A stretch of DNA of 64,000 nucleotides from positions 10,974,001-11,038,000 of the forward strand of contig CM106585.1 in assembly GCA_048013815.1 (NCBI GenBank), in the 5' to 3' direction. Shown here in pieces: positions 16,405-60,439 of the stretch. The notes under the pieces were generated by a model, which saw only the letters and a list, made by a program, of their open reading frames with translations, was not told the DNA's origin and ran no database searches. The position numbers were made by a program, and so were the translations under genes. The stretch comes from Setoptus koraiensis (taxonomy: Eukaryota; Animalia; Arthropoda). Within the stretch, counting starts at the first letter, position 1; each line of letters starts with the position of its first letter.

Positions 16405-16436
<32 letters not shown>

Positions 16437-24573: not shown

Positions 24574-25380
24574 TTAATTTTGGTTTGATACCTTCAAGTT
24601 CATCTGATCAAGAAGCTCGTTTTGCTGTTGTTGTTGCGTACTTCGCGCCCCAGGCACATAACCCGATCTTAACAGACTGTTTATCCTATCGATAGACTCG
24701 AGATCCTTGGCCTCTTCGAGCGCTGCTCTGGCCTCCTCGATGGCCCTCTGTTGTCTTTTCTCATGTGAGTCATAATCGTCAACTTCAACCATCTTCTCGG
24801 TGTAGTCGTCATCCTCTTGTTGGTCAGATATCGAAGAGAAGGCTTTTGATTTGATTCGCAATTTAGCCAGCAACGCTTGGCCTTCTTGTCCAGAGAATAG
24901 TTTATTGACTTCTTCGCGTTCCTTACTTTTGATTTTCTTGAAATCTAATAAACGCAGATGAGAGAGTTGGTGGATCACGTATTGTCGGTAATATTTTTTA
25001 GAGGCGACAGGATTATTTATCAAACTTAAAACTCTTAAATTGGTTAGTGTCATCAATGGGTCAATGTCTCCCAGCTCCTGAATATAATTATTGGTTAATA
25101 TTAGTCGCTCTACTTGTGGAATTGATTCATGTAATCCTTGAGATATTTGTGAGATCCTATTATTGTTTAGTAAGATGCATCTCAGACGAGGTAAAAGTGG
25201 AAAGTTTTCTAGTTTCCTGATATCATTGTCAGACAGATCAAAGCAGTCAAATTGATTGAGTGTGGCTCCCAGGTTTTCGATATTAGGTATCTTGAGTGAT
25301 CTGAGCCTCAGTTCTCTATCTGATGTGGCACGATTAGTATATTGATAGGAATTTTCGATGAGGTCAGGCGTGATTCGCAT
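24574..25380 (-). CDS. SNRPA1: U2 snRNP protein A' (leucine-rich repeat), intronless CDS, 268 aa
   Basis: MRITPDLIENSYQYTN...RELRLRSLKIPNIENLGATLNQFDCFDLSDNDIRKLENFPLLPRLRCILLNNNRI...LRLLDFKKIK matches U2A'. Start taken at ATG 25380. Confidence 0.97.
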   Translation of the reverse strand: MRITPDLIENSYQYTNRATSDRELRLRSLKIPNIENLGATLNQFDCFDLSDNDIRKLENFPLLPRLRCILLNNNRISQISQGLHESIPQVERLILTNNYIQELGDIDPLMTLTNLRVLSLINNPVASKKYYRQYVIHQLSHLRLLDFKKIKSKEREEVNKLFSGQEGQALLAKLRIKSKAFSSISDQQEDDDYTEKMVEVDDYDSHEKRQQRAIEEARAALEEAKDLESIDRINSLLRSGYVPGARSTQQQQQNELLDQMNLKVSNQN

Positions 25381-25730
25381 TTTGATCTTAAGGTGACTGT
25401 TACACAAAAAGTTAATAAATTTAATGTTCTAAACCAGACCGTAATTAAAAATTAATGATCCCAACAATTAAATGTGGTTTGTATCTACTTTTCAGAGTGG
25501 GACCTTGAGAGCGAAATTCAAAAAAAAAATCTCGAGCCAAATATGCCTCAAAATGCATTACTAAAGCTTTATTTCAAATTTGACGCCGTACGCTTGTATA
25601 CTAGACTAGAAACCCCAACACATGTAATTACAGAATGATAATAATAATAAACTCGCAATTTTATCAGGCAGCTCTGTAAATTTTTATTATCTTTCGCCTC
25701 GAACTCTAACTACACAATCAAACTTTCATC

Positions 25731-28700
25731 ATGGATCGTCGAAACCAGTTCAGCCTGGTAAAATCCCAGGCCAATTATTTATTTGAGGGTGACTTTCGAC
25801 GTAGACCGGCTCAAAATTTATCTGGAGCAAGCAGAAGCTTAGCCAGGATGGAATTACTTCAGCAAGCTGCAGAGCAAAGGAGAAGCAGGGAAGATAATCG
25901 ACGCAGAGAAAGTGCAGCCCTCATAATCCAATCATGTTGGAGAAAATACAGATCTAATAATGCTCATGTAAGTTAATTTGTTTTGAACCCCGTCTCTTTA
26001 TTTTCTTACAGACACTGTGACACAGCAATGTATCTTATCCAAATTTGCAGGGTTCGACCATGAGATCAAATTTTGACAATCTAGTCAATAAGGTGGGACG
26101 GCGGGGCATAACTGAGGAAGAACTAGAATCTGTTGTTCCAGCCTTCCTTATTTTCTTCAGAGCTTCGAAGGACCAGGATAGACTCATATGGATAAGTAAA
26201 AAGATCCTGATCGATCAAAAGCGTATCACTCAATTGTTACAAACCATGCATCACAGATGGCTCTACAGGATATGTAAACTGCTTCATCTAAATCTCAATT
26301 TATTAAATGAATCCTGCATTGGTAATAGACCCATTGCAACGCAATTACGTATCCTAGAAGTGTTTACGACGGAATCTATCTACACTCCCCCGAAGAACAA
26401 AACCAATGCGGACGACAACTCCGACTCAATGCAATTTGAACCTGAAAGTACTTCAATCTTACGACTATCAATGGTTTGGAGAATTCTGATAAAGAGTAAG
26501 CTATTTAGTATATTAAGGAAGCTAGTAGATCAACGTGTTCCGGTTCCATCCGAATCCACCATAAATCCGCCTACAGAACTTGCCCAATCTCTGGCTGAAT
26601 TGATTAGACATGCCCTGGATTGGCCATCTGCTGACCATCAGTCACGATGTTTGCTCATAGGCTCTTTCTTGGGAGAATTCTTTGCTGGCCCATTGAGCCC
26701 CCAAGTAGACCTGTTTTTCGCACCGTATCTTGCCTATCATATGCCTACGAATCTCAGAGCTATAAATTTGGTTAGTGTTTTGAGAGGACCCTTCCCTGAA
26801 ACAATAAGACTCTACACGGACGGCCAGGAGAAAATTTGGGATAGCGAAATGCTCGATCCCTCGGACAAACCATCATTTGAACCCTATCAACATCTAATTT
26901 GGATGTGTCACTCTTTCTTGAAACTAATCCATCGAAACGTTGCTAGACTCAGTGAGGACGATGCACACTCATACCTCCTTATTTTGAAGGCATTCATGGT
27001 GCCAGTTACATTTTTTTCAGAATTATCATTCATCAATCAGACCAACGACGATGATCCAGAAGAAGAATACTTTGAAGATACTACTGAAATGTCTGACGCT
27101 GTCTGGTCTTATTCTAGAAAACCAAGAGACCAAACTAATAACATAGATGAGGCAATATCAAGAATGATAAGCTCTCTAAATGAACCTAATCACGTGGATT
27201 TCTTGATCAATCTGATAGCACCAGCTAAGGATGTTGATAACAACGCGCGAAAGAATGTATCCTTCACTCAATCTTTCGATGCAATCGTCAAGATTTGCTA
27301 TCTTATGCTTACTCATGAACATCTTGCAGTATTCGAATGCCGCCTACTGTACACTTTGGCCTTCAGACCTACATTCTTGAGACAGCTTTGGAGATATATC
27401 CTTACCGCCGCTAGCCCTTGCTTATTTGGTAACCCTACGCCAGTATATTCTATGTTGGCCCGTGGGACCAATATTGGACCGGAAGTCTGGCCTCTTATAG
27501 TTCCTCATTTGAGCTTATTCTGTTCTTTGTTCAGTTATCTTTTGCCTACTTTAGATGACGAGGAATTTTACGAGATCAGTAAGAATGATTTGATACTCGA
27601 AGTAGCTGCCGGAAAGCAACGACATAATACAAATAAGCGTAATAGTTCCATGCCATTCAAAGTAAGCAACGAACTTGTCTTAATCTGCTCCACTTTACGT
27701 GATATATGTGTTGGTCTAGTTGAGATTACCTATCAAGATCAAAGACCGGGGTATATGAGAACAGCCGACTGGTCAAATCAAGATGTACACACCAAGTTAT
27801 TTTCTAGACGGGCTGAGGGCCTTTTTAGAACCATAGTGAGGCTCGTCAGACAGTTACATTTACGCGATTCCAGGCGCCAATTCTGTCCAGAAGGTATGTA
27901 TCTTTCACAATTCGTAATTTGAAAACTATCAATCTCTTCGTAGTATTCATGATTTTTTTTTTTTTTGAAAAAATGACACGAAATAATAAAATTTAGGTCA
28001 TTGGATTAGCCCAAGTGTGCAAATACCGCCTAGTAAAAGAATTGACTTTGAGGCTTGTATTAATTTCAGGAAAAGATTCTTCCGTTATGGAGCATTTAGG
28101 CACCTCACTAGGGAGGAGCTAGAAACGGAAGGTAACTATTTACATAATTTAAGATCTATTCAAATACTCTTCTTTTCTTATAAAAGTAAATCTAATATGA
28201 TGAATTGCTCTTGTTCGATCATGATTGAAAGGTCCCTCAATGGTTTCAAGTGATATTAGAACTGTGGTGATACTCCAAGAGATACCGTTTGTGGTATCAT
28301 TCCATGATCGTGTTCAAATACTTCATTGTCTAATGGCCAAAGACAAAAAATCACATTATACCGAAGCCTATCATTTTGGTTTACCCGGTTCAACTATTCA
28401 AGTCCAAATTAGACGTAATTATATTTATGAGGATGCTTTCGAGAAGTTGTCGACTATCAACCAACCAAACTTGAAGCCACCTCTTCGTGTTTCCCTAGTC
28501 AATGCAGTAGGATTAGATGAGGCTGGCATCGACGGGGGTGGATTATTCAAAGAATTTCTTGGAGAATTACTTAAAACAGGCTTTGATCCAAATAGAGGCT
28601 TTTTCCGGTCAACAAAAGATCAACTATTATACCCTAATCCATCTGCTAAAATTCTGTTTGCTTCGAGTAGTCAGGGATACGATCAGCATTATGAATTCCT

Positions 28701-29490
28701 CGGCAGGATGCTAGGAAAGGGTATATATGAGAAGATTATGATAGAACTTCCACTCGCAACATTCTTCCTAGCCAAACTATTAGCCCGCCATTCAGCATCT
28801 GATGTAGATATTCACAATCTAGCTTCATTAGACCCCGTATTGCACAAAAATCTAGTATATTTGAAAAATTATCAAGGTGATGTCGCAGACTTGGGACTGG
28901 ATTTCACGATTGCTAATAATGAGTTAGGCGAAAACGAGATTGTCGAGCTGAAACCTGGCGGCTCAAAGATCGCTGTTACTGCCCAAAATAAGATAGAATA
29001 CGTTCACTTAGTTGCTGATTATCGTCTCAACAAACAAATACGTACTCAATGCGCTGCATTTAAAAGAGGTTTGTCTCAATTGTTGGATATCCACTGGATT
29101 AGAATGTTTGATCCGAAAGAATTACAGATATTGATCTCTGGTACACCTACAGCGATAGACTTGGATGATTTGCGTAGAAACACACATTACGCTAATGGTT
29201 ACACGGACACAGACTCAGCAATAGAAATATTCTGGCGTGTCATAAAGCAATTTGAGGAAAACCAGAAGAGAAAATTGCTCAAATTTGTAACATCATGCTC
29301 GCTACCCCCTCTTCTAGGCTTCAAAGACTTGGTGCCTCAGTTTACCATAGCACCAACTGAACCAACTAGATTGCCATCTGCTTCTACTTGTATGAATTTG
29401 TTGAAGTTGCCTAGATGCGAGGACGAAGGTAGCATGAAATCAAAGATTAGCTATGCAATTGAATTTAATTCAGGATTTGAATTAAGTTGA
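25731..29490 (+). CDS. UBE3C: HECT E3 ubiquitin ligase UBE3C-like with IQ motif, 4 exons, about 1157 aa
   Basis: Exons 25731-25967, 26051-27893, 27997-28131 and 28232-29490, all GT-AG and in frame. N-terminal FEGDFRRRPAQNL, IQ motif IIQSCWRKYR, HECT AGIDGGGLFKEF, catalytic RLPSASTCMNLLKLP, C-terminal GFELS. Confidence 0.95.
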
Positions 29491-29806
29491 GCGTTTACAA
29501 TAACGTGTCACAACAAGAAACTTTGGAGCAATATAATAAAAACACTATAACAATTAAATTGATTGGGACATGGGTGTCATAGGCCGCACACCATGTACGT
29601 GTGATATCATAGTACCTTTAATGTAAACACCGATGCTGTTATATACAGTTTCCTAAAAGAAAAAGAGTCTGTATAAAAAAATATATAGATAGAGTTGTTT
29701 CTCACCAGACAGTACTATTGAACCGAGTGCGGTATTTGTTTTGTCTTCATCTTCCTTCACATTGTGTGTAAATGAAAAATAAATGCATGTACATTGTGTC
29801 CATATT

Positions 29807-30316
29807 CTATTCTTTTTTGACAGATGTCATTTCGGATGAAGGGAGTAGGTCAAGAGCGTCTCTGTTGGAGCTTGGCGAGGTTGGCTGTTTGTCGGCCTTC
29901 ATACCCTGGGTGGCTAGCATCTCTAGATCAAATGCCTTGCGTGATTTTTTGAGTTCTTCATTCATGAGTAGCAAGTCTTTTACACGGGCATGCTTCCTGG
30001 GGTCCCTTCTGACTAGATACATAATATCATCGACAGTTATCTTGCCCGATCGTCCTACCTCCATGGCTTTTCTTGTCATTTCTGTGATATATTTGATGAC
30101 TAAATCCTCTAGTAGGTCAACACTTTCAGTATAAGGGTTCCTATCGTCCCCAAATCCATACATCATACATCTGAGTTCCTTGCTGTATAATCTCGATCCA
30201 GTTGCAGGTGGTGGACCCATGACGTTTTCGTTTGTCGAGGCCATTGTGTTGGGCTGTTGTTGATTGCCGGTCTGCCTATTTGAGGTCTGTTGTTCGTTTT
30301 GTTGTTGGTTGTCCAT
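29807..30316 (-). CDS. TAF13: TFIID subunit 13 (histone fold), intronless, 169 aa
   Basis: LYSKELRCMMYGFGDDRNPYTESVDLLEDLVIKYITEMTRKA...RRDPRKHARVKDLLLMNEELKKSRKAFD. First ATG at 30316. Confidence 0.96.
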   Translation of the reverse strand: MDNQQQNEQQTSNRQTGNQQQPNTMASTNENVMGPPPATGSRLYSKELRCMMYGFGDDRNPYTESVDLLEDLVIKYITEMTRKAMEVGRSGKITVDDIMYLVRRDPRKHARVKDLLLMNEELKKSRKAFDLEMLATQGMKADKQPTSPSSNRDALDLLPSSEMTSVKKE

Positions 30317-31769
30317 TCGTTTCAATTATTATTCTATTGTAAATGTAGCTACACGTGAAAGGCATTAACTAAACAAATATCAGCAAATCAACTGTTTGTA
30401 GCGATTTATTAAAACGATTTTGATTTTGACATGAGGCGCGTGAGTCCGAGGGGTCAAGTCACTTAAACTAACCCCAAACTTTATATACTAATATAATTAG
30501 TTTAATGGAAGTCTGGCCTCCGTCGACAATAAAATTGAGATGACCAGAATCATAATAAAATCAATCAAAACAAAAACACACGGTTTGTGCACAATGTGAG
30601 TAAAGCGAGTATTTGCACAAATTTAACAAAATACACCCGCACAGAACAAATCTTCAGAAGTTGCAGCGTGTTGTTAGGCGCGCAGAAAGCGCCGATTATA
30701 GATACTGTGCGTGTGGTGCACATTACTATTTGGCATACACATTCGGCGCATAGTGAACTTATCAACTCACCGGTATCGCCACCTTGCTCACCGGTCAGTT
30801 GGCGCCGCCAAGGTGAGACAGGTGAAATAGTAACGACAAGCAAAGGATTGTTGTGAATATATTAAATGTACATGTTCAAATCGATCAACATTAGCCGATC
30901 ACATATGTTTGGGTGGCACGTAGTCATGGGTCCGGTAGCGAGAGCAGAGCGCGTAGTGAGGCGGATTTATGGCGCGGCATTGAATTTTTCTGGCCGGATT
31001 CCGATCTCGTGACCGGACCAGACGGCTCCGTCCATCTCACCGTTTGTATGTCTAGCTGGTGTCAATGTTGCGCAATCTCACAGTGACCGGCTAGCCGGAG
31101 AGGTCGCATAGAGGCGCTTGCGCACTGCGTGTGATGTGTGTGTGTCTTTATGGCAATTTGTCGACAATGACTCTTCCCATCGGCACCAACTTTGGCCCCA
31201 ACTTTTGCTTCAAGATAATTGGAAAGTGCGTGGGCACCGGCACCAATGCACCAGCACAGGCAACAGCAACAACAACACCAGCAACAACAATATCATCAAG
31301 CAACAAGAACAACAATAAATGATAATAATTAAGCATTGGTCTATGTAGACACTTGCACTGTGTTTCCACCTTGATCGACATTTGTGAGTTTATTTATCGC
31401 TATCATTGCAAACACACGCGGCGCTTCAATGATAATATTAACGTGTAACGTCCAGGTTGTTTAGTTGTAATACAAACACAAGAATTGCGTCGCCAGATAG
31501 AATAGTTTAGAATGTACAAGTCAAATCAAAAGTTGACCATTGTATCAGTTGTATCAGTTTGTGTGGCCGCGGCCAAATGACGACGAAATTGAGCGTTGTG
31601 CTGAGTAGATCCAATTGATAGAAATTTGATAAATTCGCATAGGGTCGCATAGTCGCTAGTGGCAGTGAGCCGATCGCCACCGTGTTATTTGCCTAGCGCT
31701 GCTCGGGATAGTATTGGTGACAATTTGACAAGCACACATAACAAGTGAGACAAGCCCACACTGAACCAG

Positions 31770-44350: not shown

Positions 44351-44356
44351 TTTATT
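44351..44356 (-). terminator. Poly(A) signal of secreted-family paralogue 1
   Basis: AATAAA on the minus strand about 105 nt after the stop. Homologous TTTTTATTC(A/G)TA context at 52531-52536 (paralogue 2) and 58396-58401 (paralogue 3). Confidence 0.6.
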
Positions 44357-44461: not shown

Positions 44462-45487
44462 TTATTTCTCTCGCTGGGCTCTTTCTGGCTGGAATCCGCA
44501 ATCAAGTTTCTCGCTAATACACCAGATTTTGTCAGAAGTTTCAAATTTCTTTGGTTCTAATTCCTTGTTTAGCTCGTCACTGAGCACTTCGTTCGACAAG
44601 CTTTCAGGTACTGCACTGCTTGGAGAACAATTTAGTGCTTTTAAACCTTGGCAGTATTGGACAGCTTTGAGCCACTGACTGACTATTGGGCTGGTCCTCA
44701 ATTTATTGTCTGTAACATCGTCATCATCTCCGGCTCTAAAACCATAGAAAAATAATCTCATAATGGGATGGATTGAGTTTTGCGCATAACTATCAATCAA
44801 TTGGCAAGATCGCTTAACATTCACAAACTGTTCAGCCATTTCTTGGCTATCCAAACTATGGGATTTAGCACCAGATTTAGACAACAGATCGCTCGCTATA
44901 ACGATGTCCTCTGGTAGATCGACTTCGGATGGATCGACTTCGATTAATTTGCTAATGATTTGGTCATTTTCTACAGTATCCAAGCTCTGTTTGACGGCCT
45001 CGTCAGATTGCTCTGCCTCCTCTAGTTTCTCCTCTAGGTTTTGCTTGCAGGTTAAAATAATTTGACCATATAGGAATGCTGTGAATTTTAATAATCCATG
45101 ATCACGGTTCTGTTGAACGGATCGAGATTGCTTGCCATTTATGCGTTTGTTAAATTGCACCAATTCCTCGATGATATCTGATCCGCACACAGAATGTGTT
45201 GCTCTAACGTCTTCAACTAATTCGTTCAGAGCTCTCACATCTCCGACACCGTCAAAACTGTTCAAACAGTTGTTGATGAGCTCAGTAGTGGGCTTGCTAC
45301 CTAGCCCCGGTGTCTCTTCCATCTCTCTTGCCAATTCTCTGACCTCCAACAGTGATTCGACCTCATCGACTCTTTCCAAGCAAAGTTCCTCCGACGACGT
45401 CCATAGTTCCCCGGCTAAACTGCCGGGCAGGAAACCGCCAACGACGCCTACGATCAGTAAAAAAGACAATACTTGTTGCACTGACAT
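44462..45487 (-). CDS. Secreted six-cysteine protein of unknown family, paralogue 1 (341 aa)
   Basis: Intronless ORF; hydrophobic N-terminus MSVQQVLSFLLIVGVVGG (signal-peptide-like); aligns end to end with 52655-53725 and 58453-59517; TATA box and AATAAA present. Confidence 0.9.
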   Translation of the reverse strand: MSVQQVLSFLLIVGVVGGFLPGSLAGELWTSSEELCLERVDEVESLLEVRELAREMEETPGLGSKPTTELINNCLNSFDGVGDVRALNELVEDVRATHSVCGSDIIEELVQFNKRINGKQSRSVQQNRDHGLLKFTAFLYGQIILTCKQNLEEKLEEAEQSDEAVKQSLDTVENDQIISKLIEVDPSEVDLPEDIVIASDLLSKSGAKSHSLDSQEMAEQFVNVKRSCQLIDSYAQNSIHPIMRLFFYGFRAGDDDDVTDNKLRTSPIVSQWLKAVQYCQGLKALNCSPSSAVPESLSNEVLSDELNKELEPKKFETSDKIWCISEKLDCGFQPERAQREK

Positions 45488-45560
45488 CTTGATTTGAATT
45501 TTTATTCGGGGATTATAGAAGACTGTAGTCTGTTAAGTCGTGCAAGTCTCACTGCTCATT

Positions 45561-45945
45561 GACTGTTATCGGACTACCGGTGATCTCATCCCTATTTATA
45601 CGAGATAAAAAAATGTTTGCTCAAACAATCTACGTAGAAAAATTCTGTTTTTAGAATGCTATATTATCATCTGATGAATATGAGTAGAGTGAGTAGCAAC
45701 ATTCCAAACATTTTTGAAAATTTTTATCCCAAAAATACTTATTCTGGCTGGAACAACCATTGAAAATTTCTCTTGTTGAACAGTTTCTATCACCAGTGAC
45801 ACACGAAAACACGAAAATTGCCGACCAAAAAACATTTCGGAGAGTTGTTTTTCAAAAATGAAATGTTTTCGCCCCTTTGTCTGACATTTGGCTTGACATT
45901 TACCTGGATGACGTTTTTCAACATTTGTCAATATTTTGCTGTGTA
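45561..45945 (-). promoter_or_regulatory. Conserved upstream cassette of paralogue 1 (TATA box plus shared motifs)
   Basis: TATAAATAGGG (TATA at 45593-45600), ACAGTC Inr-like about 27 bp downstream, and a TTTTTAGAATGCTATATTATCA block. Homologous to 53830-54215 and 59610-59870. Confidence 0.7.
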
Positions 45946-45989
45946 TTTTGAGCTGCAGTTGCAACTGTGACGTTGATGGCAGACAATAG

Positions 45990-46352
45990 TCGGAACTACG
46001 CAACCATACCTTATTTTCGAAAATAGAAGGCAGAAAATGGAAGCAACACAGTTGGACTGCCTTTCAATTTATTGTCTGTAACATTCCCGGTGTCGCCGGC
46101 CTTGGTACCTTTGTAAGCTCAGCTCACAACCGGAAGTCCTCTGTATCCAAGGAATGATCGTCCAGTTTACGGACCTTGGTTGTTCAAACGAAGAAAAACT
46201 GGTTTCTCGCACGCATGGGCTTAGCCTACAGAGATTTCTAGGCCGGAGACACCGGGAATGTTACAGACAATAAATTGAAAGGCAGTTCAATTGTGGTGCT
46301 TCCATTTTCTGCCTTCTATTTCCGAAAATAAGGTATGGTTGCGTAATTCCGA
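45990..46352. repeat. Long inverted repeat (hairpin) partly derived from secreted-family coding sequence
   Basis: Arms 45990-46102 and 46240-46352, 113 bp each, ungapped, 6 mismatches, plus about 25 bp of more diverged inner pairing. The inner parts of the arms translate to G.KAGDTGNVTDNKLKGSP.V, homologous to all three paralogues. Confidence 0.93.
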
Positions 46353-46838
46353 ATTGCTGCTAAATACTATCCGACGCTGCGAGGCAGCGGATTTAGCATC
46401 ATCAGCGATTATTAGCGTCATTACTATCCCTAGCAAGTTGTGAGCATAGTTGCCTGCGCTGTCCAGTGGCGGCGCTCGTCAATTGATAATTGATAATCAA
46501 TAATTGATTAATGAAGCAAGTCAAGTTTGCAAGCCAATTTCATTTGTTTGTATCGACAGAGGCTTTCGATGGTAGCCGGCCCCTCGGCGGTTTGAGCAAA
46601 CAGGCCCCAAATGTGCCCCCGCAATGAAAAACAAAGCGGGTCTTGCCAGAGGGTCTTTGTTTTAGTTTGTTTTGCTTTGCTGCATTATGCATGTCAGGTG
46701 CATCGAGCTCATTGCACTTGATATTTGCATGTTGTGCAGTTGTCACGTGAAACAAACAAAAAATGAGCGCGTTGCAATTGGACACTGGCCGCCCGACATT
46801 CAATATTGTTATTTACTCGAGTCAACATCGCCAACAGC

Positions 46839-46871
<33 letters not shown>

Positions 46872-49013
46872 AATAATAACAACAACAACAACAACAGCGG
46901 CAGCAGCAGCAACTAATACGTGCCACGTAACACGCAATACGTAATATTGTGCATTACGCAACACGGCTCATATTGCATAGTGGCGTATGAGTGCACTTGA
47001 GTGAATGGTCATTGTTCTATTGAAATCAACCGGACAAATAATGGTATTTCTGTGGCCACACACACACACACACACACAAAGCCAACTTATATTACACGAT
47101 GGCTACTTTTTGGTAAATGACCATTGTTAGTTGTAAGTAGTTGCAGCTGATGTTGTTGTTGTTGTTGTTGTGTCTATTCATCATTAGCTGGCAACAAGCG
47201 CAAGTATATAAGTGGCTCCCATTGTCTTCTACCTGTCCTGTCCGCGACAACGGACACCACCGCACACAGACAGCATACGGCACCAACTCTCTGCCGCTGT
47301 CACTTATACCCAGATATACCCATATGGCACCGATATGGAACCCAACGGGGTTATATTAACGCTTATAACGGCATATCCGCATGTAACAACAGTCGAAACT
47401 TGACCAGCGTCGCATAATGGCCGCTGATGGAATGCTTGTACATGCCAAATAGGGCAGATATGGATCAGGTATGGCTACCTGTATACGAGTGCTGTATGTG
47501 ATATATGCGCTATGTGTTATGTGTGATATATGCGCTATGTGTGATATACGGATACATACATATGAAACATGTATGCACCGGGCCGGCAGGTAAGCCGCTT
47601 ACTCGCTGGCCAAGACAGTCGAGTTGCCGGCGACAAGCGTCCACTTGGCTTTTGCACAGAACAAAGAACCGGCTTGCCCGTGTGTCACCATATGGAGCTT
47701 ACCTGGTCATCTGGTCATCTGGTCACCTGGTCACCTGGTTGGCTGGTCACCTGTCGTGCTTTTTGTGTGTGTGTGTGCCTTCCCCTTTCCCCTTTCGCGT
47801 TTTCTCGACTCGTCTCTTCTATTGGCTCGTTGGTGCGTTGCATCATGTCACTACAGTCACCAAGCCAAGTCATGCCAAGCCACGCATTTGGCGAGCTTAC
47901 CGTAACGGTTGTCGCGTTGCTGCCGTTGCTGTGGCCGTGACTGCCCAGTGGCCACTCAATAATGTCTGTGGCCATCAACTTGACCACTGCACTGCTGCTA
48001 TTTGTGTGCACAGTGTGACTGCTGCGCCATTCGATTGCCGGGCACTCACCGCGCCGCGTTCAGTTATGGCCAGTTCAGTTACCGCCGCGTTCAGTGGTGA
48101 GCGGGCGCGGACGCGGGCCCGCTACCGATACCGCACCCGCGCCACTGGTCACCATTGCAAATAGATAATAATCTCTCTCTCTCTCCGTGTTGCATCACTC
48201 ACATAGCCAGTAGTGTGCTGCGGCATACATAGTATACATAATATGCAACGTAATATCCGCCGCTGCCGCTGTTTGTGTGAGCGGACTCCAGCGGCGGCCG
48301 TGCATATGTTTACCTGGCGCGTGTTGTTGCCGGCCGCGTCCATTAGCGGCCGGCAGCAATTCGGCCGCGTTTGTCAACTATGTCGCTTTGGCCAGTGGGT
48401 GCACAGGGCAAAATTGTTGTTGGCTTCGGTCGTCCAAAATCAATTACGTCGCCAGCAGCGCCAACAACAACAACGACAGCGACAGCAGCAACGACAACAG
48501 CGACAACAACAGCTACAACAACCATGGCAGCAGCAGCAACAGCGACAAAAACAACAACAGCAACAGCAGCGACAAGCTCGGTGACATTGGCCGGCACGGG
48601 GCGCCGTTTGCGCCATATGCCGGTCAGACAAGCAAACAAACAAACACACTCGGGCTGTGTTTGCGGTGCACTCGACGACACGGCCGCCAACCGGGACAAG
48701 ATCCCGTTGACTTTGGCCAACGGGTCGCTTGGCCGCGACACACAGGTAGCTGGCGCCACTGTGCTGGTACTGTACCAAAATACCTGTGCAAACCAGAGTC
48801 TGCTTACCAGACTCTGGACATAAAGCGGACATGAAGCGCAAAATATAATTTGCGCAATATATAATTTGATTGTGTGTACGTACAATAAAATGCGAATTTG
48901 CGGCCGGAAGGCAGCAAATCAATATCTCGTCGTCGTTGCCACTAACAGCCAGCGGGTACATAGCGACTATTTATTTATATATGTCACATACATAAACATA
49001 CATGTTTATATGT

Positions 49014-49110
49014 ATATACGGTATATACGGTATATGCGGTACATGCGGTATATGCGGTATATGCGGTATATACGGTATATGCGGTATATACGGTATATGC
49101 GGTATATACG
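49014..49110. repeat. 9-bp tandem repeat (CGGTATAT[G/A])n
   Basis: About 10 units read directly. Confidence 0.9.
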
Positions 49111-50021
49111 ATATATATATGATGGCCGCTACGCGGCGCTATTATAATTACGAATTGCGAGCGCCAGCGCCAACTGGCTGGATACGGCTAATATATAATA
49201 TAATAATATAATTAGTACTCATTCCATGTATGCTAATGACTCACTTGATACGATACCGACTGGCCGCATATCGAGCCCATATCACAACAAGACGCGCGGG
49301 CCGGCTGGCCCGATAATAGCGCCATGCGTAATGTAGGTAGGGCGCCCATTGTCGGCCGGCAGGTCGGCCGAGTCACAGTAATAATGAGAAATGCCCCATG
49401 TGTGCATGCATATAGCATACACCAGCGGCCCGGCATGCAACCATAAACAGCAACTGGCCAAGAGAAGGGGTATTTTCGCGAAAGCTAGGGTACGCCCGAC
49501 AGCGGCACCGGCCGATCGGTCACACGATCGGCAGCGGCCCGCACACACACACACCAAGCAGCGCATGTTTGAGTGACCAGTGGCCAGTAATTATAATGAC
49601 CAACTGATAGAGGCCATATAAATGAGTTAGTAGCTTATTTGATTGCGTAATAGATGGGCTTGGCGCGCAGTGCGGCGGCCACCGTTGGTTGCAGTGGCGA
49701 GGGCAGCGGCCAATGTTGGCGTCGTTAATGCTGTCGGCTGCAGTGACAATTCGCGCAAATTGCGCAACCACCCACTTTGCTGGCCTCGTTGCATAACTGG
49801 CCCCACTGGCTAGCCGTTGCCGGCCCGCTGCCACCGGCTAACTGGGCTAACCCATTGTGAGGGGCACGCGTTTTAACGCGTGCTATCTGTTGAGTGAATA
49901 GTGTGCCAAAGTTTGTTTGTTTGCGCGCTCTTTCGAGCGGCTCCTTCGCGACCTTGAGTCGCGGCCTCAAGTTGCGCCCAACTCAAGGTAGTGTACACCT
50001 ACACCTACACCTACACACTTA

Positions 50022-50105
<84 letters not shown>

Positions 50106-51793
50106 CGCGCAATAAACAATGCAAACTAGTAATTAGATAGTGCCTATTGCATCATCATTGTCATTATCGTCACACACAATTGGCTGGCCGCTCTGATTGG
50201 CTGATGACTGGTTGCATAATGGTACCCAGCGGCGCGTACCTGGCGCCACTAGGCGGCTGCGGGCACGCAAAACGGTATTGCACCGCTCGTGGCCGACAAT
50301 TGCACTGCCGTGCCCGCAGATTGTGCCCATTTGCACATATACGCGCCGTTGTTTGCCAGCTTGTGAGGCTTTGTGAGGCCGTTTGAGGCTGTTTGAGGCC
50401 TTTTGAGGCCCCGACAGCCTCTTGCCGACGGCGATTGCCGGCCGATTTACACTCAGATCGATTGTGGCTCCGTGCTCGATGCTCTGTGTCAATGTTCAAT
50501 GGCGCCCTCTCGTAATGAAAGTGTCTTGTTGCAGTGTTTTGCTCGTGGCCGCTGCCTGAATCTGTCCGTTTGTTTGCCTGTTTGTTTGTCTGTTTGTTCG
50601 TTTGTTTGTTTGTTGGCTGCCGGTGATCGGGCTCTGAATTTTTAATTTCGACAATTTTACTGAATATCACATTACTGCAATGTATCTATTCACTTAGTGT
50701 TATCACAATCAACACTGTCATATGGAGGCCGAGACACAAGCGGCCAAGACGACAACTAATCGCTGGTGAGTTTTAGATGGTTGAGCGAGCCAAACAAGCG
50801 CCCACCTGATAGTTTGAGCGCTGTAAGTGGCCGACAGGGGGCCATGATTGCTTACTTTGTTGCGCCAGCAGCAGACGATGGTGGCAACAGTGGTGGCCAG
50901 CATCCACTATTATCCATTATTTATTATCGTTATAACTATTATTATTCGTTCGTTCGTTATTATCAATATGGATATCGTCATTTTTATTATTACCGCTATT
51001 ATGCTAATGCCGCTCTGGTTGCCTCACACGAGACCGGCCTGGCGAGACCGTGTGTTGCAATGCGCAAGAATGCGCCAGCACGCGCCACAATGCGCCACAA
51101 TGTGCGCATTCTTTTGGGGCCCGCAGCGCACATTCATAACTGTGCCGCGTGTAACGTGCGACATAACACACGCCGGCATATATTATGTAAGATTAGCGAC
51201 GGGTTGCCGCCAACTGGCTGCACGCGGTGCATAGCGGTGCATAGCGGTGCACGGCGGTGCGCGGCGTATGCACCGCAGTGCTGAGGGCTCGTCGAGTGGC
51301 ACCAAAATGGAATAACATAATGTGGCATAATAATCATAATATATGCCAATGGCCGGCCACGCCAGCAACAACAACATTAGCGACAGCGACGACAACGCCG
51401 ACAACAATGATGGCAATATTAATGATAATGCGCCCGATGATGCAGTGCACCGTCGTGCTGGCTCGCTGGCCAAACGTTGGCGCTCGCCAAGGCGGACAGA
51501 GTGGCCAGAGCTTATGATGACGGTCAGCGCCACGTAATACGCGCAATGGGCGCCATAATAAGCTAAGTGTTGCCCAATACGTGTTACGTGTCTGTGTAGC
51601 TGTGGCCAACACGTGCACGCCAAGTAGTGACATGATTATTTAGATCGGCGAGCATCTTGTCGTTGTCGTCGTCGTTGTCGTCGTCGTTGTCGTCGTCGTT
51701 GTCGTCGTTGTCGTCGTCGTTGTTGTCGTTGTTGTTGTTGTTGCTGTTGTCTGGCGGCGTAATGTTGCCGTTTTACATGTAGGCTGTTAGGTA

Positions 51794-51834
<41 letters not shown>

Positions 51835-52219
51835 ATTGTCATTGGCACGCAAATAATAATAATGTTGTTTGTGCTAGGGCCCAACTTTGTTGTTGCGCTG
51901 TCTTTGTTTTGATGTCGCTGCTGCGCGCCACTTACAAATAGCAAATTACCAAAACTATGTGATTGTCTGCTTGTCCAGCTACGTGCCGACGTCTACTCTG
52001 CATCCGGTTTGCTGTCTGAATCAACTAATTGTGTCGTCTTCGCGCTGCGCTAACCGTATGCAGCCGACACTGCGGCGTGTGATGAATGATGATTCCCTCA
52101 TCATTATTAATCATAATTAATTTCGCTTATAACCCTATTTTGTTCATAAGTGATGGCTCAGCACGGCCAGTCGAAAACACTCAAGCGGCGCCTTTTCAAC
52201 TTGCATCATGTAAGCGTCT

Positions 52220-52264
52220 GCTTTTCGCTCTTCGGCCCCGGGATCGGGCCGAAGAGCGAAAAGC
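52220..52264. repeat. Perfect 19-bp inverted repeat with 7-nt loop
   Basis: GCTTTTCGCTCTTCGGCCC / GGGCCGAAGAGCGAAAAGC. Confidence 0.9.
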
Positions 52265-52654
52265 CGAAACCGAAATAAGCGACCGGGAGAGTGCGAGCGG
52301 CGACCGAGCGAGCGGCCCGCGGGAGCAAAACCTCCCGGCCACTCCGATTCCGTCTTTTGATCCACCGAACGAGACGCATTAAGCCGTCTCCGAGAACCAC
52401 CTAGATTCGGTCGAATCGGCGAGCGGTCGAATCAGGAAGTGATCGAATGAAGAAATGGTCGAATCGCGAAAGCACGTCACAAGATGAGAGCCTCTGGTGG
52501 CGAGAGCCCGAAAAATTTTCGCACACTTTTTTTATTCATATGATACTGACAGACGGCTTCGTATTATCGCTCGCAAGAGCCCGCGATTAAGCCTGCGATT
52601 AAGCCTGTCCGTGGCCGTATGGAGGCAGCCCCCAGATTGCGCTCCATTCCGCGC

Positions 52655-53725
52655 TCAGTCATCCCACTCTGACCCCTCCGAATCTGAATCCGAATCCGAC
52701 TCTGGTTCCGGTTCCTGCGGTACGAATTTGCTCACGAGATCCGAACCAATTTCGCTGACATGCTCGGTCACATCGAAGGTCTTTGGCTCCAAGGCACCGT
52801 ACAGGCTTTTGGGTACTGCCTCCCACGGGCGGAATATTGTTATATCTACACCGAAGCAATATTGAATAGCCTTGAGCCAGTGGCGCACTCTTGGGCTGCT
52901 CGCCAATTTGTTGTCAGCAGCATCGCCGGTGTCGCTGGCCTTGTAACCGGAGTACGATAATTTCATAACCGGATAGACTGAGTCTTCAGCATAACTATGG
53001 ATCAATTGGCAAGATCGCTTGAGCTCCACAAACTGGTCAATCAATTCTTGATTGTCCAAAGGAAGGTAAATTGGTTTGTCTGGTGCATCTCCGCCGCGTT
53101 TGAATAATAAAAAGCCCGATGGTTCAATATTCTGCGGCAGATCAACGTCTAACGAAGTCACATGGGCGTCGACAATATGACGAACAGTTTTATCATTTTC
53201 CACAACTTCGAAGCTCTTTGTGAGATCCTCGCCGCCTGATTGTTCTGCTTGCTCTAATTTTGTTTCGACGCTTCGCTTGCAGGTTAGATTAATCTGGCCA
53301 TATAGCAATGATGTGAAATGAAGCAATCCATGAGTTGTTCTGTCCTCCTTGGCTCGAGATCCATAATTTTGAATGTGATCGTTGAATTCCAGCAACGCAC
53401 CAACGAAATTCTTTTCGCACACAGAATGTACTGTTTGCGCTCGTTTAACAATTTCGTACAGATCCCACACATCTTGCTGACCATCATAACTCTGCAAACA
53501 TTCATTGACGATTTCAGTTGTCTCTTTGCTCTCCAAGTTTGGTGTTTGTTCAAGCTCTTTTGCAAATTCTACGAATTTCGCCACTGAGTCGATGGATTTT
53601 ACTCTGCTCTCGCAAAGTTCCTGCGACGATGTCCATAGCTGTCCCGAGCCGGCGGAAATGCCAGCAGCGCAACAACCAGCGACGCCCACGATCAATAAGA
53701 AGAATGACACTTGTTGTACAGACAT
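52655..53725 (-). CDS. Secreted six-cysteine protein of unknown family, paralogue 2 (356 aa, acidic tail)
   Basis: Intronless ORF MSVQQVSFFLLIVGVAG...; same six Cys motifs; C-terminus EPEPESDSDSDSEGSEWDD. Confidence 0.9.
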   Translation of the reverse strand: MSVQQVSFFLLIVGVAGCCAAGISAGSGQLWTSSQELCESRVKSIDSVAKFVEFAKELEQTPNLESKETTEIVNECLQSYDGQQDVWDLYEIVKRAQTVHSVCEKNFVGALLEFNDHIQNYGSRAKEDRTTHGLLHFTSLLYGQINLTCKRSVETKLEQAEQSGGEDLTKSFEVVENDKTVRHIVDAHVTSLDVDLPQNIEPSGFLLFKRGGDAPDKPIYLPLDNQELIDQFVELKRSCQLIHSYAEDSVYPVMKLSYSGYKASDTGDAADNKLASSPRVRHWLKAIQYCFGVDITIFRPWEAVPKSLYGALEPKTFDVTEHVSEIGSDLVSKFVPQEPEPESDSDSDSEGSEWDD

Positions 53726-53829
53726 CTTACTTCAAGTTTGTATCAATTATTGGATTCGATAAAGTTTACTGTGGACTGGTTTTCATTTAAACACAATCTT
53801 TAACATAGAAATAATAGTAATATTTAGTC

Positions 53830-54215
53830 AAATGTCAGCCCTATTTATACGAAATCGAAATTTTGTTCCTTCGAGGAGCCATATTTGAGGAGCTCTATTT
53901 TTACATTGCCATATCATCATTTGACGATCACAAGCAGATCACTTCATGCGCATGAACAGCGAAAGTGGCAGCATTCGAGATATTTTTAGGAATTTTTATT
54001 TTGAAAAAACCTGGTCCATCTGAAACAATCGTCGGAAATTTCCCTTGTAAGGCAGTTTTTCCATCAGCGCTGCTGCATGAAAAGATGAGAAAATTGCCAC
54101 ATGAAACATTTCAGAGCTGCCTGTCAGAATTGAAATATTTTCGTCACCTGTCCGGGCCATTTGACATTCACCTAACCTTGAAATGTTTTCTGACGTTCGC
54201 AAACAATTTTTGATT
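53830..54215 (-). promoter_or_regulatory. Conserved upstream cassette of paralogue 2
   Basis: TATAAATAGGG (TATA at 53842-53849), TTTTTACATTGCCATATCATCA, and further blocks collinear with the paralogue 1 upstream region (AAATTGCC..AAACATTTC, TTGACATT.ACCT). Confidence 0.7.
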
Positions 54216-57200
54216 TATTTTAAGCCATGGTCGGTGTTCGGAGAACAAATTTGAAAAATTTGAAAGACGTACCTAGGTGGATCTGAGCCAAATGTGAGAT
54301 TTCTGAGTTTTGCAATCATCAGAAAAATTTAGATTATTAACCGATTTCGGCATCCCTTGTGATGGGCCCTCATCTTCACCACTTACCTGGGCCTATTCCA
54401 GCTAAAAGGAGCGCACACATTTTTCGTTAGTGGGCCATATTTAGGTTTTGTTTGGTGGACGAAATCCTGTGCCGATGTGATGTGTGCCAACGTTATCGTG
54501 CTGGGCCCCATTAGCGGACCGGAGCGTTTTCTGGGAAGCTCCATCCGCCCGATAACTACTAATAATAGATGATGGCTGCCCACACTCGACAGCTACGATT
54601 GATAATTAATGCGTCATAATCAATCACGATAATAATACAATTTGCAATAACTCCATTCAGCCACTCAACTGACATGTTACCTTGCGAACGTAAACTAATC
54701 GCAGTGAATTGCGGTGAATTATTGTTTGTATTATGTGTTATTTATTATAATTGACTGCCACTCGCAACTTGCCAGGCGCTGCTAGGCGAGCCAATTTCCT
54801 ATGAATATGCACGGGCGATTCCAGTTAGTTTTGCCCCCTTTCAAGCTGCTGTAAAAATACTGACCATCACCAGAATATTTTTGCATTGCAATCGTTAGAG
54901 GGCGATCGATGATGAAGCATCAATTTCATGAAAATCTGTCGCAGATAAGTGAGAATAAATACGGGCCAACTGTGGTTGAAAGTTGAACTAGTAGCTGGCA
55001 AATCGGATGCTGGTCGCGACCGAAATCATCGTTATGTAATCTTGGCAGCATCTCTGTGAGCGATGCTACAGGCAGCGGCCGAAAGCAAACTTTGTGGGCG
55101 CCAGTGAAGCCGATACACAGCCTCATTATCAGTGTTGACAAAGTCGACTCGCAGCGATATGAGCAAGTGAGACGGCAAACAAGCAGATAATCAAGTCTGA
55201 CCGCCAACAAAGATCGCAAAGCTTGACCTTGTCGAAACAACAACAAGTTCCGGTCGCCCACTAGTACGACCTGCCACTCGCTGCACGACTGGCTACGACT
55301 GACTAGAGCGGAAAATTTCGCTAGGCGGGCCCAAATCAATTCATTGTTGTTGTGCTGGTGCGATGCCGCCAGCAAATCTGGCGAATTACAAGTAGCGACA
55401 GTGGGCCAAAATTGAGGTCAATTTGAGCTTGCACGCACGCACGCAGTGTATCCGTTGATCTTTTTGATGTGCTTGTATCGTGCCGTTAGTGCCATGTCAA
55501 CGGCACAATTTGGGGCCCCTTATCTAAATAGCGGGCCTAATACGGCCATGATCTATGGGCCGTCTCGAGGGATCTCGGGCGCGTCTGGCGGGGCTGGCCA
55601 GCTTGTGTCGCAAGTGGGGCCCCAGCTAGCGGAGTTGTTGACCAGAGCGCAATAGGTGATTGTTTCGGTGTGCGCAGTGCGCACTAATTCTGTTGTGCAC
55701 GGCGACACAACAAGCCAGACACACACACACACACACACACACAGAGCACACTAACTGGCAAAGATCCAAACCGGAAGTGGCGCAATCGATCTTGTGTTGG
55801 TGCGTCTTAATGCACTGTGTGTGTGTTGGTAGCCGGTGGCGAAATTGCGCAGCCAAAACGACCAAAGTTACACAATAACAATAACACACTGGTCACTCGG
55901 CCAGGCGGCCAGCTCCATTGTCTATGGAGCGTGTGCATGGGAGCCCGCGAGTCAGATTGATAATTTAATTTGTGTCGTTGTCACTCTGCTCACACGGGCC
56001 TCGCCCTGTCGGTGAGACGGCATGGCCATTGCCGAGGCTGACCGCTCATTCGTGGCACGAGTTGTGCGCAACTCGTGACCATTGAACGGGACCAATTCAG
56101 AGCAAAACAACAACTCTCTGTGGATTAGCTGCTTGCTTGCTCGCTGTAAAGCGCCCCCGTCGTCTCAAAATTGTGCGACAAAAGTTCATTCAGCCATCTC
56201 GCCAAATGTCAATGGGCCCGCAATGAGCAAAACGCATGCGGCACATTATTGTCTTTATCGCGGCACATTGTCTTTATCTCGTTTGCGCACAAAACGTTTG
56301 GGGCCCCGGCTGCAAACGTTCGTCCAAATGAGACGATAGTGCAAAACGCGAACTGGATCAAACGTAATGAAGCGCGGGCGCGCTCGTCATAACGTTGCAT
56401 AATAATAATGCATTCATAATCTAATGCTTGCTTGGATGGTTATCAATTTTGGAGCCGCCTCGAGCGTGTCGGTGGTCGGACTGCGCGCCGGGCGCACTTA
56501 GTGTCAAACGGTTGCCAGCTCGCCCGCACAAAGTGCCCACACCAAGCCGAAATATCCGCTTTGTGCCGGCAAAATATTCAGCAATTTTGTCGCATATTTG
56601 TTGCTGTTTTTGCCGGCCACACATATTGCCGGATATCGGCCGGGCTGGCAGTGGGCGCGCAGTTTGCCAATTTTCATTAAATTGAAATAAGAGCGACAAA
56701 GAAATGCGACGACAGCTGGCTGTTGAGTGCAAAATAGACACATTGCCGGCTGGCTTTAATCGTATCCGTCGGTTTGCAACAATTGTAACAATGGCGCGAG
56801 TGGGGCGCATGTTGTGCAATTTAGTCGCAAATGCGCGACTTGTGAATTGCGAGCGACTCGGCTTCTCGAGTGGGCCCCATGCGCAACACACACACACAAA
56901 AACACAGTTTAATGGGCCCCGCTAACAGCGAATTGGCCCCGGGCCTCGACAATTCGCGACTCGGACGCGGGGCCCCAGGCTGAAACATATCTCTGTGGCA
57001 TGTCTGCGAGCGGGGAGTTTGTTTGTTTGTGTGCTCGCTTGTTTGTTTGTTTCTAGCCATCAGAGGAGCGGCAGGAGTTTGTTTGAAAGAACAACAACAC
57101 CAATATGAATGCATGTTGATTGCGCCCCTTCGGTTGCGCAACAACCGGCTCGACGGGGCGCGCACAAATCGATATCAGACGCACAGTTGGCGAGAGAGAG

Positions 57201-57849
57201 AGAGAGACAGGGACGTGTCAAGCCGTTATTTAGCTCATCTGGTTCAGCTCATCCGGCGATTTGTTGACAGTCAGCGATGCATGACTATCGTCGGACAGCC
57301 AGCCAGGCGACTGCAGTGCCAATAAGCAGTTCGGGCGCCGCTGCCACCGACGGCGCGGCTGACCGGCCCGCTGACAGCCGACCACAACTGTTGTCGGGCC
57401 GGCGTCCGTGTTTGCGTGCCGCAAAAAATGATGCTGCACGAGAAAAAAAAAGCGCTGGCCCAATTTGGAAATTTGCAACAACTTGGCGCCGCTTGATTAT
57501 TGGCACATTCGTTCGTGGGGCTGTCGGGCTGTTTGCGTTAGCGCCGGATGTGCCGGCCGATTGTCCAATTGGGTGCTGCTGCACCATTGGGCCATGATGC
57601 AAGCTGCACGTTCACAGTTGCCAGTTCCGTCGACAGGGCCCCCATCAGTTTGGCACGCCGCCGCCGCCGCCTGACAAGTTTGCTGCTGTTAGACGGGCAC
57701 GCGCGCGATATATCGCAAATTAAGCCATTTCATTGATGGCCAGTCAGACAGCCGACGAGTGAGTGGGCCCAGTTGACGTACCGAGTGCCAACAGTGGCAG
57801 TTGTTGGCTACCTTATTTGCATATTAATAATCACAGATGTCTGTGCACA

Positions 57850-58207
57850 GTAAAGTATAGTGTTGCTGGGGCCCCACTCGGCCCCACTGTTGAGGCACAG
57901 CTTGCAGCGTTGCACACGTGACGGCGCACCGATGCACCGGCAGCAGCAGCATCAGCAGCAGTTTTGCAGTTTTTTGTTCGCCTGCACTTGTCAAATGATC
58001 GGTTACGTCATGAGAAGCGGCGTCATGAAGTTGTTGTTGTTGTTGTTGCTGTCTTCATGTGTCGTGACTTGTGGCTTATGTTTGTGTGGTTGCCAGGGCA
58101 CGGCAGGGCAGGCTAGTGATCGGGCCAGCCTCCCTCCTCCCGGGCGGGAGCGCGGAGCAAAAAGGGGAGCGAAATTTCAGTCGCTCCCCCCCGATCACCA
58201 CGATTTG
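57850..58207. repeat. Left arm of about 355-bp inverted repeat flanking paralogue 3
   Basis: Reverse complement of 60087-60439, from GTAAAGTATAGTGTTGC to CCGATCAC(C/T)ACGATTTG; differs mainly in repeat-length variants and scattered substitutions. Confidence 0.93.
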
Positions 58208-58452
58208 CGCCGGGTCTAAATTGCGAGCCCAGCCAATCTTAGATGATGTAAGTTGCAATCACAGATCAGCAGTTAGAGTCCCCATCTACCTAATGAGATG
58301 CGAAAAGCTGGACCCCACAACTGGCCAGGAAATTGAGTATGAAAACAAAATCGAGAACAGGAATTAACACCTCCAGAAAATGCTCAATCCTTGTTTTTAT
58401 TCGTATCATACGATTGATATGAGCGAAAACCTCATATAATGCTGCCCATCGC

Positions 58453-59517
58453 TTAGGGCTTACCTCTCAGCATATTCATACCTTTCTTGAACCATCCTCT
58501 TATTCCGGATTGATGGCCATAATCGTAGTATGTTGGCTGGTATTTGCATTGAAGATCCGGCTCAATGTCATTGAATTGGTCAGCCACTTTGAAGTTCTTT
58601 GGCTTGTCATGCCCATGCTTAAACGCCTTTCTTTCAAAAATACTACTTGGAAGTAATGTCAAGATTAAAGCTCGGCAATATTGGACAGTTTTGAGCCAGC
58701 GCTGCACTACCTGGCTGCTCTTCAATTTGTCGTTCGTAACATTGTTGTTGTCTTGGGCTGTGAAACCATGGTTAACTAATATCTCAATTGGACGGATTGA
58801 GTTTAGCTCGTAGCTTTCAATTAATTCGCACGATTGCTTCAGATTCAAAAAGTTTTCTATCTGTTCTTCGGTATCCAATGGAATTTTGTTGGTGTCGCAG
58901 CCCCACATCAACGTTTTCTCTGAAACGAGCTTATCTGGTAGATCGATTTTTGCTGACAATCCTTTCAAATGATTAGTGCACTGATTGACTATTCCACGAA
59001 CACTTTGATCATTTTCCACAACATCAAAGCTCTGCTTGATAGCCTCGTCTGATTGTTCTGCTTTCTCTAGTTTTGTTTCTAGGCTTCTTTTGCATGTTAA
59101 AATAACCTGACCGAATATCTTTGTAAGGAATCCTTGCAACCCATGCTCCTTTTTCGTTTCATTGGGTCGAGTATGATAGTCAGAGATTTTATATTGAACC
59201 ATCAAAAGTTTCTCGGTGGATTTCCGCTCACACACAGAATGAAATGTTGGCAGTGTCTGAACTAGTTCTTTCACAAGTCTCACATCTTCAGCGCCCTTAT
59301 AACTGTTTAAACAGTCGTTGATTACTTTGCTTGTCGTTTCGCCATCTATTTCCGGTGTTTGCTCCATCTCGTTTGCGAATTCTAGGAACTTTGACACTGA
59401 GTCGATAGATTTTACTTTGTCCTTGCAAAGTGCCTCCGATGATGTCCATAGTTCAGCGGCGGAGCAACCAACGAGGCCGACTATCAATACGAAGAATGAC
59501 ACTTGTTGTATTGACAT
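58453..59517 (-). CDS. Secreted six-cysteine protein of unknown family, paralogue 3 (354 aa, basic tail)
   Basis: Start taken at MSIQQVSFFVLIVGLVG (ATG 59517) by homology; same six Cys motifs; ends GIRGWFKKGMNMLRGKP. Confidence 0.9.
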   Translation of the reverse strand: MSIQQVSFFVLIVGLVGCSAAELWTSSEALCKDKVKSIDSVSKFLEFANEMEQTPEIDGETTSKVINDCLNSYKGAEDVRLVKELVQTLPTFHSVCERKSTEKLLMVQYKISDYHTRPNETKKEHGLQGFLTKIFGQVILTCKRSLETKLEKAEQSDEAIKQSFDVVENDQSVRGIVNQCTNHLKGLSAKIDLPDKLVSEKTLMWGCDTNKIPLDTEEQIENFLNLKQSCELIESYELNSIRPIEILVNHGFTAQDNNNVTNDKLKSSQVVQRWLKTVQYCRALILTLLPSSIFERKAFKHGHDKPKNFKVADQFNDIEPDLQCKYQPTYYDYGHQSGIRGWFKKGMNMLRGKP

Positions 59518-59609: not shown

Positions 59610-59870
59610 GTCAAACGCCAGCCCTATTCACGAGATGGAAATTTTGTTCCGTCAAAAAACTATATTTGCGAAGCTCTATTTTTAGATTGCCATATCATCA
59701 CTCGCTGTACGTGAGCAGCAAAAGTTGCGACATTTGAGATATTTTGAAAAATTTTCATTCTGAAAAATATTTATTTTTTATTCTGTCAGAACAATAATTG
59801 AAAATTATTTTTTTGCATAAGTTCGATATGAAAGTATGGGAATTTTCAGAGTTGTTTGTCAGAAGTGATC
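59610..59870 (-). promoter_or_regulatory. Conserved upstream cassette of paralogue 3 with variant TATA
   Basis: GTGAATAGGG in place of TATAAATAGGG (59625-59632); TTTTTAGATTGCCATATCATCA block conserved. Confidence 0.6.
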
Positions 59871-60086
59871 TGGACGGAAAGCAAGATTTCAGCTGTTCCC
59901 CCGCTCACTGGGGTCGCCCCAACATGACAAAAACGTCACAACGAGAGCAACTTTACGACAGATAGTAACCAAGGCCAGCTCGAGCCACAAAAGTCGCTTC
60001 TTCGTGTTCTTCTGTTGTGAGCTGGCTTGCCATCCGACACACACACACGAGCATCTGTGATTATTAATATGCTCGGGCCTTGCGCA

Positions 60087-60439
60087 CAAATCGTAGTGAT
60101 CGGGGGAGCGACTGAAATTTCGCTCCCCTTTTAGTCCCGCTCCCGCCCGGGAGGAGGGAGGCTGCCCTGATCACTAGCCTGCCCCGTCATGCCCTGGCAA
60201 CCACGCGAACATAAGCCGCAAGTCACGACACATGAAGACAGCAACAACAACAACAACAACAACAATTTCATGACGCCGCTTCTCATGACGTAACCGATCA
60301 TTTGACAAGTGCAGGCGAACAAAAAACTGCAAAACTGCTGCTGCTGCTGCCGGTGCATCGGTGCGCCGTCACGTGTGCAACGCTGCAAGCTGTGCCGCGA
60401 CAGTGGGGCCAAGTGGGGCCCCGCAACACTATACTTTAC
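60087..60439. repeat. Right arm of about 355-bp inverted repeat flanking paralogue 3
   Basis: Reverse complement of 57850-58207. Confidence 0.93.

Follow-up and report, generated by a model that had tools for sequence, protein, structure and literature searches.

Three intronless genes for predicted secreted six-cysteine helical proteins, probably derived from a membrane-anchored family, in Setoptus koraiensis

The DNA considered here is a 64,000-nucleotide (nt) stretch of Setoptus koraiensis contig CM106585.1 (assembly GCA_048013815.1, positions 10,974,001–11,038,000), referred to as the window. Within 15 kb on its minus strand are three open reading frames (ORFs), all intact and co-oriented: paralogue 1 (44462–45487, 341 amino acids (aa)), paralogue 2 (52655–53725, 356 aa) and paralogue 3 (58453–59517, 354 aa counted from its ATG, which was taken as the start in place of the TTG at 59538 where the mechanical ORF begins). 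Start-to-start distances are 8238 and 5792 bp, the gaps between coding sequences (CDSs) are 7167 and 4727 bp, and the proteins are 41–47% identical in pairs. All three open with MS(V/I)QQV followed by a hydrophobic stretch, and share six invariant cysteines (C36, C74, C101, C147, C228 and C279 in paralogue 1 numbering). Relatives that are single ORFs align with each of the three over its full length, and the window coding regions are therefore intronless. The three genes probably form a local tandem cluster of an unnamed, restricted family, whose six-cysteine helical ectodomain would here have been released from an ancestral membrane form. The window holds no further full copy detectable by tblastn with the three proteins; a short family fragment is present twice, in inverted orientation, at 46047–46295.

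The hydrophobic N-terminal segment of each protein (best 12-residue Kyte–Doolittle mean 2.7–2.8) is followed by SLA|G, ISA|G or SAA|E, placing small residues at positions −3 and −1. No later transmembrane segment, KDEL motif or glycosylphosphatidylinositol (GPI)-like tail was found by sequence scan in any of the three, and to judge by these features the proteins are probably soluble and secreted by the classical pathway. Removal of the predicted cleavable signal peptide would leave an α-helical domain of about 300 residues held by the six cysteines, which we infer to form three disulfides. An initial annotation, made from the letters of the window, had described three co-oriented paralogues of 341–356 aa with signal-like N-termini and six invariant cysteines in short motifs; the ORFs, the hydrophobicity and cleavage-site pattern, and the alignment of the three proteins agree with it on each count. 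The C terminus of paralogue 3 retains a G-W motif that in long relatives precedes a linker. At the 3′ end of the same gene (58465–58475), ...AGGTAAGCCCTAA, which includes GGTAAG, looks like a 5′ splice donor lying immediately ahead of the stop codon. Downstream of the window copies, a sensitive hidden Markov model (HMM) search for a remnant of the linker or transmembrane segment, or for a hidden exon, gave noise only.

The three proteins match no Pfam-A family at the gathering threshold. The best sub-threshold hits are DUF5376 (13.6 bits, cut-off 25) and GAT (12.3 bits, cut-off 31), with none for paralogue 3; ten relatives likewise had no Pfam match above threshold, and NCBIfam and ESM feature searches returned weak hits only. 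A word-index search gave one relative (P0001, 42% identity), from the assembly of run SRR33593474. Exhaustive searching of 1.84 billion cluster representatives with a profile recovered 30 proteins, 13 of them below 1e-30, and 19 more-distant full-length relatives came from a further search with a 24-sequence alignment. The family numbers about 50 sequences from several species and is apparently limited to mite-like arthropods. All relatives whose source was looked up come solely from Logan, JGI or ENA assemblies, none from NCBI or UniRef, and the only name attached to any of them is ‘hypothetical protein’; their confinement to Logan would reflect the absence from public annotation of the proteome of this species, probably an acariform mite. 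The initial annotation had called the proteins lineage-specific and assignable to no known family. Both descriptions stand: a taxonomically restricted family is supported, and its relatives are unnamed.

Common to the family is the signature C..C..HSVC..QVxLTCK..C..W..QYC within one helical domain. It is present in the three window ORFs, which match the A3 family profile in hmmsearch with E-values of 2e-104, 4e-100 and 5e-99. The six cysteines are invariant across 24 sequences, and invariant or above 90% across 46, and a hydrophobic signal-like segment begins nearly all members. A strong C-terminal transmembrane helix (criterion: 19-residue Kyte–Doolittle mean above 2) also lies about 60–80 residues from the end of every member of about 525 aa and of many others; the window copies and a few relatives lack it. 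Read from these sequences, the family in its basic and most frequent form is a type I membrane protein, about 525 aa long and predicted to comprise a signal peptide, the six-cysteine helical ectodomain, a linker, the transmembrane helix and a short tail, and the window copies are putative anchor-less, soluble derivatives of it.

This membrane form occurs in many species, including on contigs of environmental metagenomes. In two species, whose proteins are 50% identical, its gene is present once and follows immediately after one for a kinesin. The pairing of the kinesin (about 750 aa) with the 525-aa form is seen at L002 7468–11578 and L010 5479–9584. The relatives’ contigs carry their genes as long single ORFs, among them one of >1370 aa with a Med23 domain on L013, and these genomes are therefore very intron-poor. 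Just ahead of the transmembrane helix in several long relatives (P0010, at about aa 427–478, P0006 and P0003) is a His/Gly-rich stretch with a weak NCBIfam hit to a His-Xaa-Ser repeat (E 0.004), absent from the window copies; this juxtamembrane segment may perhaps bind metal.

An AlphaFold2 (AF2) model of paralogue 2 built from 46 sequences has a predicted local distance difference test score (pLDDT) of 88.6 and a predicted TM-score (pTM) of 0.85. It comprises about twelve helices, one of them 42 residues long, and a few short strands, in a domain of about 300 residues. An earlier model from 4 sequences was poor (pLDDT 62.7), and fold searches with it were discounted. With the good model, Foldseek found no credible neighbour in the PDB (best E 0.42) or among clusters of the AlphaFold Database (AFDB; best E 0.16, TM-score 0.16). 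The top VIA-align score against 48,161 chains, Z 6.8 over 95 residues, fell short of the noise level stated for helical proteins, the ESM Atlas gave a TM-score of at most 0.30, and a profile search of PDB sequences produced a single chance-level hit (E 0.19). Among the viral structures of BFVD the best match had E 0.21 and a TM-score of 0.19, so that a viral envelope-type or other captured viral protein is not supported. The predicted fold has no neighbour in the libraries searched, although a missing match is no proof of a new fold.

Most close family members come from the assembly of run SRR33593474, of which contig L009 (3828–12078) is collinear with window positions 22349–30333, through the genes for PIG-U, U2A′ (24574–25407) and a UBE3C-type HECT ligase, at 85% nucleotide identity. 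Between the two, PIG-U, U2A′ and the HECT gene have 0.63–0.77 synonymous substitutions per site (dS) and 0.01–0.05 non-synonymous substitutions per site (dN). Given this collinearity and dS, SRR33593474 represents a sister species, and it is a good comparative resource for the window. It carries at least 13 family copies on six contigs, mostly as tandem pairs with spacers of 0.57–1.75 kb. In a quick maximum-likelihood tree the three window copies form one clade (Shimodaira–Hasegawa-like approximate likelihood-ratio test (SH-aLRT) 99), sister to a group of SRR33593474 copies. Anchor-less forms appear in several places of this tree, and the anchor was therefore lost more than once.

Pairs of window copies have dN of 0.42–0.49 and dS of 0.77–1.0. 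Protein divergence is thus about 10–40 times that of the syntenic neighbour genes (dN 0.01–0.05) at comparable dS, and the initial annotation was right to describe the family as fast-evolving. The window copies are under purifying but relaxed selection, as their dN/dS is 0.42–0.63; the youngest pairs in the SRR33593474 species have dN/dS of 0.29–0.31. These pairwise estimates give no signature of diversifying selection, dN/dS being below 1 in every pair. The four closest sequences agree at all six cysteines and at about 80 further positions.

The unit that was duplicated extends beyond the coding sequence. When the three loci are aligned with 700 nt of upstream and 400 nt of downstream flank, homology starts at about −330/−430 before the ATG and fades about +150/+220 past the stop, and the flanks beyond are unrelated. 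Located 113 nt upstream of the ATG of paralogue 1 is a TATAAATA box (45593–45600, minus strand) within a conserved TCGTATAAATAGGG. The same box lies 124 nt upstream in paralogue 2 (53842–53849, minus strand), where the TCGTATAAATAGGG context is conserved too. At −113 in paralogue 3 is a degenerate TATA-like TGAATAGGG (59622–59630, minus strand), with a 2-nt deletion relative to copies 1 and 2. More conserved blocks lie further upstream of the TATA region, for example GATGATATGGCAAT.TAAAAATAGAG; in paralogue 2 the upstream region homologous among copies spans 53726–54155 (minus strand). Between copies 2 and 3, positions −290 to −1 are 71–90% identical, against a CDS mean of about 65%; the promoter, 5′ untranslated region (UTR) and signal region taken together show the same 71–90%, against about 65% for the remaining CDS. 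An AATAAA, surrounded by a conserved GATATGAATAAAAACA context in the window copies, follows each stop on the minus strand: 106 nt past it in paralogue 1 (44351–44356), 119 nt in paralogue 2 (52531–52536) and 52 nt in paralogue 3 (58396–58401).

The gene units have a GC content of 39–45%, against 50–51% in the spacers, where microsatellites abound, (CAA)n, (AC)n and (TTGTCG)n among them. The picture of AT-rich islands in repeat-rich DNA drawn at the outset thus holds, as does that of a unit of promoter, CDS and poly(A) region, here as a duplicated unit with limits of about −430 to about +220. Each gene likewise has its own conserved TATA region, upstream blocks and AATAAA, as described at the outset, the TATA box of copy 3 being degenerate. 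Scanned spacer ORFs encode no transposon protein domains (transposase or reverse transcriptase), and the window contains no Rfam RNA families.

About 0.5 kb upstream of paralogue 1 is what we read as the relic of a fourth copy (45979–46360), an inverted duplication of a coding fragment (about aa 214–280) with arms about 89% complementary and an 89-nt loop; the family fragment present twice at 46047–46295 lies within it. If transcribed, this inverted relic would give a hairpin RNA. A different inverted repeat encloses the whole promoter–gene–poly(A) unit of paralogue 3, with a left arm at 57850–58210 and a right arm at 60084–60439 (367 nt, 91.6% identical); (CAA)n and (GCA)n tracts occur in its arms together with motifs of the GGGAGG type. 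The sequence outside these arms shows no target-site duplication. The repeat is not taken as evidence of transposition, and copies 1 and 2 have no comparable bracketing repeats.

The only positive sign of expression, a 180-nt contig (53115–53294) from a probable RNA library, lies inside copy 2 and matches it with no mismatches; it could be contaminating DNA. Three poly(A) or oligo-dT runs, which carry the same species label as four DNA-type runs that contain the sequence, have zero reads over 52495–58494, an interval that takes in the whole of copy 2 and the 3′ part of copy 3, the presence of the organism in those runs being uncontrolled. None of the indexed RNA runs contains the CDS of copy 3.

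The account that we regard as the probable one begins with the ancestral membrane form of about 525 aa, its ectodomain joined by a linker to the transmembrane helix and short tail. The window copies would have lost linker and anchor and should be released as soluble extracellular proteins. Their unit of about 1.7 kb would have been duplicated in tandem at about the time when the species split from its sequenced sister, and the spacers would have grown afterwards by microsatellite and other insertions. As a best guess, the proteins may be quickly diversifying soluble extracellular binding proteins, and may perhaps act on, or compete with, whatever their membrane-anchored relatives bind. Several points weigh against this account or loosen it. 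The silence of the indexed and poly(A)-type RNA runs is one, and the predicted secretion is read from the sequence only. A dS near 1 is close to saturation, leaving dN/dS and dating rough; the family tree comes from a quick rather than a careful search; and no orthologues of the three window copies were recovered from the sister species, so that the timing of the duplications is uncertain.

The initial annotation had the genes moving as dispersed cassettes. Capture and movement of promoter–gene–poly(A) units by transposable elements would account for the sharp end of homology at the unit borders and for the inverted repeats that bracket copy 3, but these repeats lack a target-site duplication, copies 1 and 2 lack the repeats altogether, and the spacers are free of transposase and reverse transcriptase. 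All copies, moreover, are co-oriented in 15 kb and belong to one clade, a decayed copy adjoins copy 1, and the sister species has mostly tight tandem pairs. Local tandem birth and death with later spacer growth is the simpler explanation of the layout because of those tandem pairs, the single window clade, the relic beside copy 1 and the missing target-site duplication, and a mobile mechanism appears improbable. Also hard to credit is that the ORFs are silent or decaying duplicates without present function. The zero reads in three poly(A) runs, the lack of copy 3 CDS in any indexed RNA run and the degenerate TATA of that copy would all be expected of such duplicates; yet the three ORFs have stayed intact over a dS of about 0.8–1.0, with dN/dS clearly below 1, the six cysteines and about 80 positions are invariant in the four closest sequences, the promoter and poly(A) contexts are conserved, and the RNA read test had no positive control.

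Of more weight, if still doubtful, is the speculation that the three proteins act as effectors, delivered in saliva or injected in some other way, to manipulate a plant or animal host. Predicted signal peptides with no transmembrane segment are what such proteins would need, their divergence is about 10–40 times that of neighbour genes, and in copies 2 and 3 the promoter, 5′ UTR and signal region are more conserved than the mature coding region, as is reported for gall-midge salivary genes (PMC2955719). Set against this are a dN/dS below 1 in every pair and a core form that is a conserved single-copy membrane protein in many species, including those of environmental metagenome contigs. Such a core points to an endogenous cell-surface role and weakens the effector idea somewhat. 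A bolder version, which we think unlikely, would have a conserved mite cell-surface protein with a new extracellular fold repeatedly shedding its anchor, and the soluble, rapidly diversifying forms acting, in this species, outside the animal on host or prey. If the new fold did act in saliva or another secretion, it would be a new structural class of arthropod effector.

On the tandem-cluster account, the locus offers a clean case of a membrane-anchored ectodomain giving rise to tandemly amplified soluble proteins, from a family of about 50 sequences that no database names and that has a confident predicted structure with no neighbour, solved or predicted. Should the species be a pest or parasitic mite that secretes the proteins onto a host, they would count as candidate effectors; otherwise they would still point to an unknown system at the cell surface, in arthropods that are poorly annotated.

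The placement of the species was addressed with the UBE3C HECT exon (28225–29487), compared as fragments because a length filter excluded full-length proteins. Its best hit is a Logan-only sequence from run SRR33593474 (98%); among named sequences the oribatid mite Medioppia subpectinata comes closest (65%), with insects at 44–55%. Proteins of the window's own genome are missing from NCBI and UniRef. In the HECT tree the window sequence groups with Medioppia and metagenome fragments (SH-aLRT 88) and then with Tropilaelaps (93), with insects separate, which suggests a mite, probably acariform. The tree rejects a dipteran or gall-midge source, at which the poly-Q/N proteins and the short introns had hinted. 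Besides PIG-U, U2A′ and the HECT ligase, the window contains genes for a Na/Ca exchanger and a DM-domain protein. The single-exon DM-domain ORF (15595–16632) contains very long single-residue tracts of Q, N, H (10 residues) and D (15 residues), and the Na/Ca exchanger ORF (8849–10687) has long poly-N tracts.

Among known systems, the small secreted salivary gland proteins of the gall midge known as the Hessian fly are reported to form tandem lineage-specific arrays, with greater conservation of the 5′ region and signal peptide than of the mature protein (PMC2955719). Window copies 2 and 3 are similar, their upstream and signal region being 71–90% identical against about 65% for the CDS. Unlike those families, the window genes belong to a species that groups with mites rather than flies in the UBE3C HECT tree, their proteins are about 350 aa rather than small, and the family has an overall dN/dS below 1 and a conserved membrane-anchored core form.

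Insect odorant-binding proteins (OBPs; PBP_GOBP) are secreted, all-α proteins with six conserved cysteines, encoded in tandem birth-and-death arrays. The window family resembles them in being predicted secreted and helical, in its six conserved cysteines and in its tandem layout. It differs in the size of its domain, about 300 residues against about 120, and in having membrane-anchored relatives, and it had no Pfam match to PBP_GOBP and no OBP among its Foldseek or VIA matches. A third likeness, by analogy only, is to soluble receptor paralogues, the decoy-type ectodomains; none of the present family's members has a known ligand, signalling tail motif or receptor function. What the two have in common is the same ectodomain with and without a transmembrane anchor, an anchor that has been lost more than once.

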